Assembly (NCBI GenBank): GCA_037447605.1
Contig: CM074812.1
Span: 2,852,001 to 2,916,000 of the forward strand
Reading direction: 5' to 3'
Origin: Zygnema circumcarinatum SAG 698-1b
Lineage: Eukaryota; Plantae; Zygnematophyceae
Length of the DNA: 64,000 bases
Below are positions 23,640 to 50,882 of this stretch, one piece after another; the stretch's first letter is position 1, and every line of letters begins with the position of its first letter. Both the position numbers and the translations under genes were made by a program. The notes under the pieces are model-generated. The model saw only the letters and a program-made list of their open reading frames with translations. It was not told where the DNA came from and searched no databases.

Positions 23640-25118
23640 AAAAAAAAAATTGTAATTTTTTTTGCAGGTTTCGAACTGGACAATCAACAAGTTAAAATCC
23701 ATAAATTTGTAATGACGTGTTGGCATGCTCTTTGTCGAGTTGTCAATTCTTGTCCACCCGGTCAAGTCAAAGTATGCCACGTGGCAGCGACCGCAACAAA
23801 ATCAACGCCAGAAAATCGAATTTTTCGTCGGCAACATTCACTAAAAACAGACTGTGACAACTGTCGATAGCACGTGTACGATTCTGATTGGTCGATGGAA
23901 ATTTTGACCTCCCTCCAGGACTGCCGCCAGGTGATCCTTGTTTTTCCCGAACCCCATTTGTCGTCATTTTTAAAAATGTATACCCCATTTGAGCCCCTCT
24001 TAAATCATCATATTTGAAACTCAAACTCCATTTGCACCCCTCCAAAGTCATCATTTCTGAAACTCCAACCCCATTTGTACCCCTTTCACTTTCACTTTTT
24101 CTGTTCTCTGAATTTCCAGCTGCCCCTCCTCCGCCAGGTCAGCCCCAGCCAAGTCCGTTCCAGCTTGTCCGACCTTTTCAATGCCACCTGTCCGATTCCA
24201 AGTGGCGGGCCAGGGCACTAACCGATACACCGACATTTCTGCAATATCGGATAACTTTGTCGGTAGCTTCCACCGTACATCACTCGACACCCTTCCCAGA
24301 TTCAACCTTCAATTTACTTCCTGAGATACCACCTGCACCGACAATACCGTACAAATCCAGCAGCTTTTCCCATTCCGTGCATAGAATGGTCGTTTTACAA
24401 CCAGTTTAACTCTCAGTCAGCGCATGGAACGTCAAACTTCTGTTAAACGGAGATCATAGAATGCGTCAGCAACGCCTGGCGACCTGCCTGGATATCACAA
24501 AGTGTACGGACGGAGGGCACTGTACCGCATGTCCGTACAGGGCCTGACTCGGGTTAAATGCGCGCGGTCAGCCGGAGACGAAGAGCGCCGCCGCTGTTCT
24601 GAGGGAGAGGGAGAGGGAGTGGGAGGGAGAGAGGGAGAGGGAGGTCGAGCGGGAGAGGGAGAGGGAGTGGGAGGGAGAGAGGGAGAGGGAGGTCGAGCGG
24701 GAGAGGGAGGGAGAGAGGGAGAGAGAGGGAGAGGGAGAGGGAGAGAGAGAGAAGGACAGAGAGAGGAAGAGGGGAAGAAAGGGAGAGGGAGAGAGTGAGA
24801 GAGGCAGAGGGAGTGAGAGGGAGAGAGAGGGGGAGTGGAAGAGAGAGAGGGGCAGAGAGGGAGAGGGGGGGAGAGAAAGGGAGAGGGAGAGACAGGGAAA
24901 ACGAGGGAGGGTGAGACAGAGAGAGAGGGAGTGGGAGAGATAGAAATTGGCAGAGAGTGGAAGGGGGGAGAGAGAAAGGGAGGGGAGAGAGAGTGTGAGA
25001 GAGGCACAGGGAGTGAGAGAGGGAAATATAGCGAGAGAGAGAGTGATATAGAGTGTGTAGGATAGAGAGAGACTGATAGAGCGGAGTGAGATAGAGACAG
25101 AGAGATATAACCTCCAAG

Positions 25119-28100
25119 ATGTTTCGCCTTCCTCCCCCCCTCCTCCCTCTCCTCCTCCTCTCCCTCTCCCTCTCCCTCTCCCTCCCTCTCCCATCCGCTT
25201 CTCTCACCACCGCCGACCTCGTCCCTTATGGCCCCACTAATGGTGACGTCACACTGAGGCGATGTGACGACTGTCTGAGCCCTGTCACGTCACTGCTGCC
25301 GTCATTCTTCTCCTTCTTCAACAAGACGGTTTACACGGTCTACGTCAGCAATAACGGCCACATTACCTTCGACGGGTGCGTAGCTCTCTCGCTCTCTCTC
25401 TCACTCTCTCTCTCTCGCTCTCTCTCTCTCGCCCTCTCTCCCTCTCTCCCTCTTACCCTCTCCCTCTCATTTCTCCCTATCAATATGATCCTCTTTTTTG
25501 GTATGGTCTCTCCTTCTAGTTTCCCGTCCTCCCCTTCTACCTCTCCATTCCCTCCCTCCCTCCCACACACCTTTCTCCGTAAGCCACTTTCCTCCCTTCC
25601 CCACTCCTTTCCTCCCTCTCACATTCCTCTTTTCCTCCCACTCTCCCTCCCTCCCACATTCCTCTGTCTGTAAATTCTCCTCTCTTCTCTCTGTCTTTGT
25701 GACCTCTCTTCCTCCCCCGTTATCTCCCTCCCTGCCACATCCCTCTCTCTGTAAATTTTCCTCTCTTTCTCTCTCTCTTTGTAATCTCTCTCCCCCCCCT
25801 CTCTCACTCCCTCCCACATTCCTCGCTCTGTAACCACCCTCCCCCCTCTCCCCCTCCCTCCCGCTTTCCTCTCTCTGTAATCTCTCTCCCTCCGCCCCTC
25901 CCTCCCTCACTCCCACGTTGCTGTCTCTGTAATCTCTCTCCCTCCTGTTTCTGTTAGCCTCCGTCTCTCTCACCACCCCCTACCTCCAGTCTGCGTTGCC
26001 AATGTATGCAATGGCTTGAACTTGCTCCGCTGCACTAAAGCGCTCCAAATGTTCAATCTTTAACTCAAATATTTTTTATAGTTCGCGCATAAAAATAAGC
26101 CGAAATTTCCAATCCAAGCTGGATGTCGTTTTTCAATTTACAGCAATAGCGGGAAAAAAAAACTGCGGAAACCAATTACGATTCAGCAAATAATTCCTTT
26201 CTTGGGCCACTTTTTTCAATTGCAGAGAATCCGGTTTCGCAACTTCGCCTATGTTTCCACGCGAGGAGAGATTTCCCCTCTTGTCTCCGTTTTGGGCCGA
26301 TATATGTGAGTGGGGAGACGCCTCTCTCTCTCAATCTCTCTCTCTCTCTCTCTCTCGCTCTCTCGCTCTCTCTCTCTCTCTCACTCTCTCACTCTCTCTC
26401 TCTCTCTCGCTCTCTCTCGCTCTCTCTCTCTCTCTCTCTCTCTCTCTCTCTCGCCCTCTCTCTCTCTCTCTCTCTCTCTCTCTCTCTCTCTCTCTCTCTC
26501 TCTCTCTCTCTCTCTTACCTCTGTTTCTCTCGCCCTTTTTCCTTCCCTCCCTCCCTCCCTCCCTCCCTCCCTCTCTCTCTCTCTCTCCAGACACGACGAA
26601 TCCCACCGGCGGCTCCGTATTCTACCGCTCTGTGGGCCCCACCAGCCGCCCCGCGGACCTCTCCCTCCTCACGCAAGGAATTCGAAGTTCGTTTCCGACC
26701 GTGGCGGAGGCAAAAACGTTTACAGCGATCGGCGGCTTTATCGCCTCTTACATCAACGTGGGGTACTACTTGTGAGTGAAGACTTCTACCAATTTAAGAT
26801 ATACAAAGTACCAAGTTGAGGTTGTTAGTGTTGTTGGGGTTGTCGCTTCCTCCTATCTGTCGCACCCTCTCCTCCTCCCTCTCCGTCCCTCACTCCCTCT
26901 CTGCCTCTCCGTTTCCTTCTCTCTCTCCCTCTCTGCCCTTCCCTCTCTCGCCCTCTCCGTTTCCTTCTCTCTCTCTCTCTCCACTTTTCCTTCTCCCTCC
27001 CCTTCTCTTTCACCTTTCTGCCTCCCCCACACTCTGGATTTGTGAAAGTTCTGGTGGTTTGTGGGGATTATAAGGTTGAACTTATTTGGGTTCTTTGTAA
27101 TGTATGAAGTTAGAAGATTGGTAGAGGTAGTTTCCTTGTCAACATTTACTTTACTTGTGATGTAGTGTTTACACATGTATGCATGTACCTCAGCATGTAC
27201 TTATTCTCTCCCCTCTCTCTCTCTCTCTCTTTTTCTCTCCCTCTCCCTCTCCCTCTCCCTCTCCCTCTCCCCCTCTCTCCCTCTCTCTCTCTATCTATGC
27301 ATGCACGTATGCTCATGACAATGGTTGCAGAAGTGACACCAACAAGACGAATACATTCCAGGCATTCATCACTTGGGGCGGAACCACTTCCTCCCCTCTC
27401 ACCTACGCATGTTTCCTCTACCCTCAGAACGGTATTCAGTGGGGTAAGAACCTCACAAACTCAAACCAAACTCAACCAAACTCCTCCCTTCATTGCTAAT
27501 TCTAAGCATTAAACAGTTCAAGTCATCAGTTAAATCTCTCTCCCTTGCCTTTAAATTTTTCCTCCTGCATTTCTTCGACTGCTGTACCGGTCCTTTTACT
27601 ATGATTTTGAAAGTTTTCATCCTTTTATTTAACACCTTTTTGAGGAGGGGATGCAGGTGGGAACTACGCTCAGGCGGGATATGATGCAGGCGACGGAAAA
27701 ACTTTCTTCAACATTCGATCGTCGGCAAATGCCGATATTTCAAATCTGCCCCTCACATCAAATGTTAACATTCCCGGAAAATGGTGCTTCAAAATCTCCG
27801 GCAGCACCCTTGTTCTTCCAAGTAAGGCTTACCTCATATTCCAAAAAACAGAATTAAGTATATAATAATCACCTATAATAATTCAGTATCATTTCCCTTC
27901 TATGATGCGCCGCTGTATTTGATATTCTTTTGCATCCTCCACCCACCTTTTTGCAACCCCTCACTCCCTCCTACCCACTCTCCCATATCTCTCCTACTCT
28001 TCTCCCTCCCATCTGTCCCAACCTCCCAAACTCCCACCTCCCCCCAACCCTCCCACCTCTCCCACAATCCCACTCTTTCCCTCCTACCCTCTCTCATATA

Positions 28101-49803: not shown

Positions 49804-50882
49804 GATTTTTTTTATTCATTCCATTTATGTGGAAAAAAAAACTTGACCTAATGCTTTACTTTTGATTTGCAGCACCTTATTCAGTTTGCTAGGGGTTTCG
49901 CGCTAAAATAATGCGCATGGCTCGTGGGGTAAAGCCCTTTGATAAGCTGGGCCAGCAGAAATAGGAGCAAACTATTTATTACTTAGCTTTTTGACTTCCT
50001 TGTATTGTACAGCTCCTGCAACGACTAGGTCTTGAAGCATATGGTCGATACAGTCTTGCAATTTGAAGGGGATCGGCACTTAGCCTATCGGATTGTAAAG
50101 CAAGTAAGAAAATAAATAGTACGGCTGATAGCGCTGGAGAAGAGAAGATGTGGAGGGAAGGGAAGTGGAAGGGGAAGAGTTTAGAGTTTGCAACAGGGTT
50201 CAGGGCGGGGGTTGCCAACCCCAGACACGCGCCAGCATGCCACGTGGCGAACACATAGTGGACACGTGGTACCTTGTTGCATCCACCTCTGCGGAAAGAT
50301 TGCAGCTAGCCGGCACACGTGGTAGTGGAGGTGGTGTTTTTGTTGCCATGTGGCTACTTTCAATTGGTTGAGGCCAGCGTGGCTGCCACGCTACCGCCGC
50401 GTCGTCAAAACTTTCCCTGACGGTCCCCTCCAACCATTGCGTGGCATCTGCAGGGATACGACTTTGGTCACGTGGCAGCCTTCGATTGGCATTTGTTTTC
50501 CACGCGACCTCGATTGGATCGAATGTGCCACGTGGCATCCTCCAATTGGCAGGCCACATGGGCAGTTTGATTGGTTCCTGATTTGCCACGTGACAAGCAC
50601 GTGCACAAACCTTTCTCTGACGGGAACCTGTAGCGCGTTAAGAACGACTCGTAACTGGTACATAGTTCGCTGTCTCCATGGTGTTTTAGAACTGTGACGG
50701 TAACTGACGCTTCTTGTTGGCAATTGTCGCTGTACGGTCCGTTGCTTGGTGATTTGCGGTTGTTGGGACTTGAAGCATCGCCGGGTTGAACAGTAAACGA
50801 CAAGCTACCAATAATGACAATTGTTTGTCGGTTTAGCAAATGACAAGGTCCACCGCCCAGAACCCAAACCGCATAATTGAAG

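Follow-up and report, generated by a model that had tools for sequence, protein, structure and literature searches.

How does a ten-base palindrome come to recur many times inside the exons of one gene, and does the constraint that holds it there act on the DNA or on the protein? The question is raised by a 64,000-nucleotide stretch of the Zygnema circumcarinatum genome (the window), in which a sequence-only reading had noticed 11 perfect copies of GCCACGTGGC and likened them to the cyanobacterial repeat HIP1.

The palindrome is over-represented and clumped

All 11 perfect copies were recovered at the positions first reported, against about zero expected, and none arose in 100 dinucleotide-preserving shuffles. 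The centre variants listed earlier at 37696, 39759, 39825, 42461 and 42614 are all real, and others are present at 18794, 39306 and 50345. GCCANNTGGC has 19 sites in the window (0.75 expected), and CACGTGGC was the top non-simple 8-mer in a ranking with 14-mer masking, which hides some motif copies too. CACGTG occurs 44 times; C occupies position -1 in 60 of its 88 half-sites, and G occupies position -2 in 58.

The copies are clumped: a single gene, the sugar-salvage gene FKGP, has 7 of the 11 (Table 1). The description of the palindrome as written into coding exons holds for these seven and also for the copy at 31207, making 8 of 11 exonic; it does not hold for 23776, 50239 and 50527, which lie in promoter-like non-coding DNA. 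Periodic spacing among the exonic sites was not evident by eye. The copy at 31207 sits in an open frame (31120-31284) that has an LRRNT-like pattern (ending CSWFGVNC). No Pfam family matched there, so it is by this motif pattern that the exon is assigned to a leucine-rich-repeat (LRR) protein. For the other copies, Pfam scans of nearby open frames returned nothing useful except a desaturase.

Table 1. Palindromes, composites and gene features in the window
Feature	Position	Strand	Details
FKGP (bifunctional fucokinase / GDP-fucose pyrophosphorylase)	36321..44401	-	Pfam PF07959, PF00288; tblastn of six homologues
FKGP exons 1-4	44401-44216, 43841-43707, 43585-43373, 42643-42248	-	homology
FKGP exons 5-8	41211-41074, 40479-39253, 37872-37276, 36719-36321	-	homology
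Composite with CACCTG centre, exon 4	42448..42469	+	CCAAT, nine bases, CCACCTGG
Mirror copy of the 42448 composite	42615-42636	opposite	CACCTG centre
Perfect palindrome, exon 4	42331..42340		reads ATW; CCAAT 42318-42322, nine bases off
Perfect palindrome, exon 6	40355..40364		reads (C)HVA; homologues C-D/E/N-I/V/L-A
Perfect palindrome, exon 6	40180..40189		reads PRG; CCAAT 40167-40171
Perfect palindrome, exon 6	39802..39811		reads PRG; lineage-specific insertion after conserved AMWLMG
Perfect palindrome, exon 6	39428..39437		reads (R)HVA; CCAAT 39415-39419
Perfect palindrome, exon 7	37728..37737		reads ATW; then GGGCCCAC and variant 37696
Perfect palindrome, exon 7	37636..37645		on conserved GHMP-kinase motif VPRGSGLG
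Perfect palindrome, N-terminal cap exon of LRR protein	31207..31216		reads ATW; exon on plus strand
Perfect palindrome, non-coding	23776..23785		in non-coding DNA spanning 22.5-23.95 kb
Non-coding cluster	50200..50620		perfect palindromes 50239, 50527; seven CACGTG; several CCAAT boxes
Divergent promoter region	44402..45459		FKGP (minus) / F-box-like ORF (plus, from ~45460); same site kinds

A CCAAT box accompanies the palindrome at one fixed distance

The sequence-only reading had overlooked a CCAAT partner and the promoter-like clusters in which the same sites gather. Four perfect copies and two centre variants have CCAAT exactly nine bases away; the remaining 7 of the 11 perfect copies do not. 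The window has 12 instances of CCAAT-N9-CCACG where 0.09 would be expected, and nine bases is the only enriched spacing: 14 CCAAT/CCACG pairs lie 0-24 bases apart, 12 of them at exactly 9. With up to two mismatches allowed, the composite occurs 31 times (1.0 expected). Its spacer is unconserved except for a predominant C-A/G-G after CCAAT, which we take to be the NF-Y-type flank preference, and G before CCAC. When a second specific site recurs at one fixed distance and the spacer between them is not conserved, the signature is that of a bound protein complex and not of a mutational bias. Variants with a CACCTG centre retain CCAAT at this distance, which indicates that the outer letters matter, as in E-boxes.

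Composites also fill non-coding DNA. The 22.5-23.95 kb stretch carries a 210-base tandem repeat, each unit of which contains one composite, the cluster at 50200-50620 has three or four CCAAT boxes at the nine-base distance, and one non-coding site cluster adjoins a TATA-like box. Many imperfect copies are present in these regions as well.

This distribution bears on a role in RNA, in which copies of the self-complementary 10-mer would pair within or between FKGP mRNAs. All seven FKGP copies would be in the mature message, and any two could form a G+C-rich helix of 10 base pairs, judging from their letters. However, the motif and its CCAAT partner also occupy promoter DNA that does not look transcribed, composites in exons occur in both orientations, which argues against an RNA signal, and Rfam found no family anywhere in the window, which also counts against such a role. 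We regard it as very improbable.

Codon usage does not account for the FKGP copies

The seven copies fall within about 3.2-3.3 kb of FKGP exons, one per 470 bases, and encode PRG three times, ATW twice and HVA twice, in three reading frames, just as first described. FKGP introns consist almost wholly of purine/pyrimidine low-complexity DNA, in which such sites cannot be accommodated. An exon of about 70 residues, conserved and belonging to the kinase half, is missing from the assembled letters between 39252 and 37873. Two assembly gaps (38864-38873 and 39187-39196) lie between exons 6 and 7, and the absence of this conserved segment indicates that the sequence is not continuous across at least one of them. 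No copy lies closer than 232 bases to a gap, so the gaps leave the count intact; any error in it could only be on the low side.

Synonymous codons were shuffled with the protein and the gene's codon counts kept, the FKGP exons being shuffled separately. The excess persisted: shuffled exons held a mean of 0.55 perfect copies and at most 4 in 20,000 shuffles, compared with the 7 observed, and CACGTG was present 12 times against 2.1 (z 7.8). CpG as such was not enriched in the same comparison. That the copies simply follow from codon, dicodon or amino-acid usage, or from chance, is suggested by the copy at 37636, which needs only codon choice on conserved VPRG, and by variant 39825, which encodes conserved AMW. 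Yet none of the 20,000 shuffles reached the observed count with a motif-shaped protein and codon pool retained, and the sites lie on derived residues. We find this explanation scarcely credible, and for FKGP the codon-usage version was rejected.

Most FKGP copies coincide with changes in the protein

The FKGP protein was compared with ten distant homologues (30-40% identity); its best matches are 30-39% identical and mostly from land plants. Six of the seven copies fall on replacements, variable loops or insertions absent from the ten homologues, which places the constraint on the DNA. Together with the use of three frames and the codon-shuffle excess, this bears out the earlier claim that DNA and not protein is constrained.

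At 42331, homologues read K-A-W where the alga reads A-T-W, and the alga's G that completes ATTGG in the CCAAT box replaces the homologues' K; relative to the ten homologues, both half-sites arose by substitutions, and there is no indel. The copy at 40180, with a second CACGTG 12 bases away at 40194, lies within a variable loop that exceeds its length in all ten homologues, and the entire composite at 39428 is inside an insertion of about 10 residues that is missing in 9 of the 10. The copy at 39802 is flanked by variants at 39759 (CCAAT at nine bases, minus orientation) and 39825, while that at 37728 is in a variable stretch adjoining a 14-residue insertion. Neither 40355 nor 37636 has an indel relative to the homologues; the latter copy was made by codon choice and has an overlapping CACGTG at 37645 and an adjacent palindrome, GTGGGCCCAC, at 37648.

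Because several exonic copies lie within lineage-specific insertions, they might be footprints or mini-insertions of transposons that carry the composite, with the inverted ends of a cut-and-paste element together giving rise to the palindromes. A foldback element at 50883-51839 does carry two composites that face inward, another copy of one of its arms is present at 23428-23640, and among the gypsy copies one contains a composite absent from its paralogue. Against such an origin, there is no indel at 42331, 40355 or 37636, point substitutions made the half-sites at 42331, and the flanks and spacers of the copies have only the two sites in common. We consider a mobile-DNA source quite unlikely. 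An origin of the copies as a repeat family was rejected on the same comparison of flanks and spacers.

The distribution fits a HIP1-like process poorly

HIP1 (GCGATCGC) is a short palindrome that is massively over-represented in cyanobacteria, within ORFs and in all frames (PMC5861425). A HIP1-like process, whether a methylation- or repair-linked bias or selection on genome architecture, would spread the palindrome regardless of genes. The window motif likewise exceeds expectation by one to two orders of magnitude, within ORFs and in all three frames, and its density in FKGP exons adds to the likeness. HIP1, too, is conserved within and between ORFs (PMC5861425). CpG observed/expected (o/e) is near 1.0 in FKGP exons and 0.55-0.64 in F-box and desaturase exons, making a link to methylation state possible.

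Within the window, however, the motif does not spread irrespective of genes and into neutral DNA. As the sequence-only reading had noted, the first 22 kb, rich in retroelements, holds only two CACGTG; about 19 kb of three diverged gypsy copies (74-95% alike) has no perfect copy and only two CACGTG, with CpG mildly depleted (o/e 0.75-0.93). Copies are likewise missing, as claimed, from those F-box, kinase and desaturase exons that could be placed. Clumping and absence from gypsy elements and three other coding stretches fit selected binding sites better than HIP1-like drive, and a second site at a fixed distance has no place in a repair-bias model. HIP1 is genome-wide, quasi-periodic, associated with cognate methyltransferases and without a link to gene regulation, whereas the window motif is clumped, has a partner at a fixed distance and fills promoter-like DNA. 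The HIP1-like system that headlined the sequence-only reading is thus a poor fit to the window, and we judge it unlikely. The best protein matches of a gypsy polymerase are at most 62% identical.

The composite resembles known plant and animal elements

The identification of the core as the plant G-box/ABRE agrees with both core and flanks: the window sites have a CACGTG core with an ACGT centre and GCCAC/GTGGC flanks, as in the element bound by bZIP/bHLH dimers (CACGTG core, CACGTGGC half-site). G-boxes are known as promoter elements, but here they are dense in coding exons and reshape the protein. The 10-mer is present in 38 papers; those examined use it solely in primers or as a site or probe of the G-box/ABRE or E-box kind, and the search returned no description of G-boxes this dense in coding exons.

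The layout matches that of ERSE-I, an ER-stress response element (PMC5499772). Its half-sites and nine-base spacer (CCAAT-N9-CCACG; NF-Y with ATF6 in mammals, bZIP28 in Arabidopsis) are the same here, and 4 of the 11 perfect palindromes belong to the exact composite. Unlike ERSE-I, the composite here usually has its second half lengthened into a full palindrome, accepts CACCTG as the centre of that half, and recurs far too often for a stress regulon. The window copies are not in promoters of ER-chaperone or unfolded-protein-response genes; they lie in FKGP and LRR-protein exons and beside F-box, kinase and unplaced genes. Our literature search found no paper linking the ERSE layout to algae.

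Human NF-Y/E-box modules (USF1/2, MAX) have CCAAT preferably 10-12 bases from CACGTG (PMC4889920). In the window this distance is 10, with NF-Y-type flanks, and transposons carry the composite here too, as LTR12 repeats carry the human modules. Those modules sit in promoters, enhancers and LTRs, whereas here the composite overlays coding sequence, an arrangement that to our knowledge has not been reported for the human modules. Overlap of protein-binding DNA words with codons was reportedly found by human footprinting in 2013 ('duons'), with a bias on codon and residue choice. Duons form a diffuse statistical bias; FKGP is a single gene that carries one defined composite at HIP1-like density, and the replacements and insertions in it are visible.

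A promoter-type site may also be written into FKGP exons

These data suggest, at a rough probability of 0.55, that the palindrome is a G-box/E-box site for a bHLH or bZIP dimer, often paired with NF-Y, and that it has also been written into FKGP exons. The full site (consensus YGCCACGTGGCR) would most likely be the landing place of the dimeric factor, with the CCAAT-binding trimer NF-Y at one fixed distance: CCAAT, eight free bases, then GCCACGTGGC. This alga seems to use the pair as an ordinary building block of promoters. Within FKGP, sites would have arisen through synonymous codon choice, amino-acid replacements and short in-frame insertions, for the most part in regions of the protein that are tolerant of change. 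We infer both the binding of NF-Y with bHLH or bZIP factors and selective maintenance from the pattern of sites. Exonic transcription-factor sites, already one option in the sequence-only reading, thus appear to be what the evidence favours; our best guess is that they serve as intragenic regulatory or chromatin-opening sites. Counting against this interpretation, promoter-type sites packed so densely within a gene body should give rise to cryptic initiation, and 7 of the 11 perfect copies lack a CCAAT box at nine bases. A search for TATA-like boxes following the exonic composites found none.

If proteins do bind the exonic copies and selection maintains them, FKGP would show with unusual clarity how regulatory DNA can constrain the evolution of a protein, with one composite repeated many times in one gene at visible amino-acid cost, and the question of dual-use codons would become testable by synonymous recoding. 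The ERSE layout, known in animals and Arabidopsis as an ER-stress switch, would then be in general use as a module in an alga closely related to land plants, which bears on the origin of the plant stress element. Should the copies prove unbound, the pattern would instead indicate that a eukaryote has some novel mutational or repair process acting on specific sequences.

A further and more speculative possibility, which we put forward tentatively, is a second regulatory code on chosen coding sequences, in which the NF-Y and bHLH/bZIP site would be selected in exons at HIP1-like density, forcing replacements and insertions and keeping the FKGP body open and unmethylated. As context for a gene body held open, FKGP has retroelements alongside it, introns of too low complexity for sites, and a CpG o/e near 1.

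A G-box palindrome is in excess in FKGP exons and promoter-like DNA

All 11 perfect copies of the ten-letter palindrome GCCACGTGGC counted in a sequence-only reading of the window were found where it had placed them, compared to none in 100 dinucleotide-preserving shuffles of the window. The centre variants it listed, in which the palindrome has an altered centre, were also recovered, along with three additional ones, and the frame GCCANNTGGC occurred at 19 sites versus 0.75 expected. The core, CACGTG, occurs 44 times. Among the 88 half-sites, C occupies position -1 in 60 and G occupies position -2 in 58, while A is almost absent from -3; this strong flank bias defines the unit as YGCCACGTGGCR. 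Of the 11 perfect copies, exons contain eight and promoter-like DNA the other three (see the table of features).

The sites at 37.6-42.6 kb fall in a minus-strand gene for the bifunctional fucokinase/GDP-fucose pyrophosphorylase (FKGP), with Pfam matches PF07959 and PF00288. Using tblastn with six homologues, we delimited eight exons totaling 3,291 bases and spanning 44401 to 36321. As previously read, three of the seven FKGP copies encode PRG, two ATW, and two HVA. Codon usage could in principle produce such copies, and a codon-shuffle control had been suggested; synonymous codons were shuffled within FKGP, exon by exon, keeping the protein and codon pool even though the motif has left its mark on both. 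The exons contain seven GCCACGTGGC (shuffle mean 0.55, maximum 4 in 20,000), 12 CACGTG (mean 2.1, z 7.8), and 30 GCCAC/GTGGC (mean 12.9), but 253 CpG compared to a mean of 258. The excess is therefore specific to the palindrome word rather than CpG, and we rejected codon usage as its source.

Table. Positions in the window of palindrome copies and of the regions that carry related sites
Feature	Position	Description
Stretch	22.5-23.95 kb	One perfect copy; 210-base tandem repeat with the composite in every unit
Perfect copy	31207	Cap exon of LRR protein
Perfect copy	37636	Invariant VPRGSGLG motif; codon choice alone suffices
Perfect copies	37728, 39802, 40180	Variable loops, longer in the alga
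Perfect copy	39428	Entire composite inside a ~10-residue insertion absent from 9/10 homologues
Perfect copy	40355	C-D-I-A to C-H-V-A
Perfect copy	42331	A-T-W in the alga, K-A-W in homologues; no indel
1-kb divergent region	Between FKGP and the F-box-like ORF	Same sites present
Cluster	50.2-50.6 kb	Two perfect copies, seven CACGTG, several CCAAT boxes
Foldback (palindromic) element	50883-51839	Outer arms of 121 bases, 94% complementary
Stretch	51.9-52.3 kb	Five CACGTG, then a TATA-like box; duplicated across a gap

The palindrome is paired with CCAAT at a fixed distance

The earlier reading missed a partner site: at four perfect copies (39428, 40180, 42331, and 50527), CCAAT lies exactly nine bases from CCACG. 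The window contains 12 matches to this composite, CCAAT-N9-CCACG, versus 0.09 expected (31 versus 1.0 with up to two mismatches), and 12 of the 14 CCAAT/CCACG pairs spaced 0-24 bases apart are at distance 9. Centre variants at 42461 and 42614 have a CACCTG centre and retain CCAAT at N9, so the outer letters outweigh the central CG, a feature shared with E-boxes (CANNTG). Spacer bases are free except for C, A/G, G following CCAAT, in agreement with the NF-Y flank preference, and G preceding CCAC.

Exonic composites occur in both orientations. This mixed orientation, together with the copies in promoters, counts against a role at the RNA level, which fails as an explanation. Two words at a fixed distance with a free spacer, in either orientation, and in both promoters and exons instead indicate a bound protein complex, with NF-Y plus a bHLH or bZIP dimer as the most likely candidate readers. 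The layout is the same as that of the ER-stress response element ERSE-I (PMC5499772) and of human NF-Y/E-box pairs 10-12 bases apart (PMC4889920). Our literature search found no published description of the motif or composite pattern.

Exonic copies coincide with changes in the FKGP protein

Each FKGP exon was aligned with ten homologues, mostly from land plants. In addition to the changes at perfect copies (see table), a K to G replacement near 42331 completes ATTGG nine bases off, and imperfect copies at 41086, 44313, and 44265 follow the same pattern relative to the homologues. Exons 2, 3, and 8, which include the most conserved, lack the motif. These alignments suggest that the FKGP protein has been altered to carry it. 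Transposons in the window carry the module, as would be expected had mobile DNA delivered the copies, but this origin fails at those sites that were built by substitution without an indel.

In exon 7, the palindrome GTGGGCCCAC (37648-37657) and a second GGGCCCAC (37719-37726) adjoin G-boxes. Both resemble TCP/site-II words, and thus the exon holds three kinds of plant promoter word. The ACGT-core word GTGACGTGAC occurs in two FKGP exons (41161-41170 and 42497-42506), encoding S-R-H both times; at one of these sites the alga has R where homologues have N.

The motif is clumped and absent from diverged transposons

Three gypsy copies contained no perfect GCCACGTGGC and only two CACGTG, and the scarcity previously noted in retroelements held, with just two CACGTG within the first 22 kb. 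These copies are 74-95% alike, and so not brand new, with CpG observed/expected ratios of 0.75-0.93. One has a perfect composite at 16584-16608, while at the corresponding place (9870-9900) its paralogue is divergent and shows a 9-base gap; gain or loss of the site thus took place inside the transposon family. The reported absence of the motif from the F-box ORF, kinase exon, and desaturase exon was also borne out. CpG observed/expected is ~1.0 in FKGP exons (36321-44401), 0.64 in the F-box ORF (45460-46496), and 0.55 in the desaturase exon (62987-63646). FKGP exons look unmethylated, and these ratios suggest that germline methylation differs from gene to gene, tracking motif presence.

The sequence-only reading had inferred a system like that of HIP1, the iterated cyanobacterial palindrome (PMC5861425), with methylation- or repair-driven gain and exonic transcription-factor sites among its options. 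Mutational or repair drive could spread a motif, but cannot explain the CCAAT partner site or the clumped distribution. Clumping, absence from diverged transposons, and amino acid costs speak against a HIP1-type drive and point to selection acting on the exonic copies. Our best guess is that exonic copies in FKGP serve as intragenic regulatory or chromatin-opening sites, which the low-complexity FKGP introns would be unable to host.

Repeats and assembly features near the sites

The tandem repeat at 22800-23400 comprises approximately three 210-base units, 92% alike, each with a CCAAT-N9-CGACGTGG composite and a CACGTGGC site. At the centre of the foldback element, a TATA-like box adjoins an inward-facing CCAAT-N9-CCACG-type pair. 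The arm of this element occurs a third time, 27 kb away (23428-23640), so the element represents a repeated family, which is probably mobile. Sequences flanking the gap at 52821-52830 (51550-52820 and 52831-54100) are identical at all points compared, and the cause is either an artefact of the assembly or a tandem duplication that arose very recently; this doubling counts five CACGTG sites and one composite twice.

FKGP introns are mostly low-complexity and purine-rich on the plus strand, with the exception of the pyrimidine-rich 42644-43372. Those at 40480-41073, 41212-42247, and 43842-44215 are microsatellite-like and 86-90% purine on that strand, which makes the FKGP sense strand rich in pyrimidine; one array repeats a unit of ~120 bases (41.2-41.9 kb). 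Composition skews suggest that introns of the plus-strand LRR gene (26-33 kb) are also pyrimidine-rich on their own sense strand.

Two assembly gaps (10 N each) fall between FKGP exons 6 and 7, at least 232 bases from the nearest copy. The kinase half begins with a conserved segment of ~70 residues that all homologues share, but this segment was not found in the assembled letters at 37873-39252. The gaps therefore conceal more than 10 bases, the FKGP letters being discontinuous across at least one gap with real sequence hidden there; alternatively, the gene is damaged. Within the intron between the gaps, a degenerate A(3-5)C(2-3) run with CCCTAAA-like words (38975-39185) resembles decayed plant-type telomere repeats.
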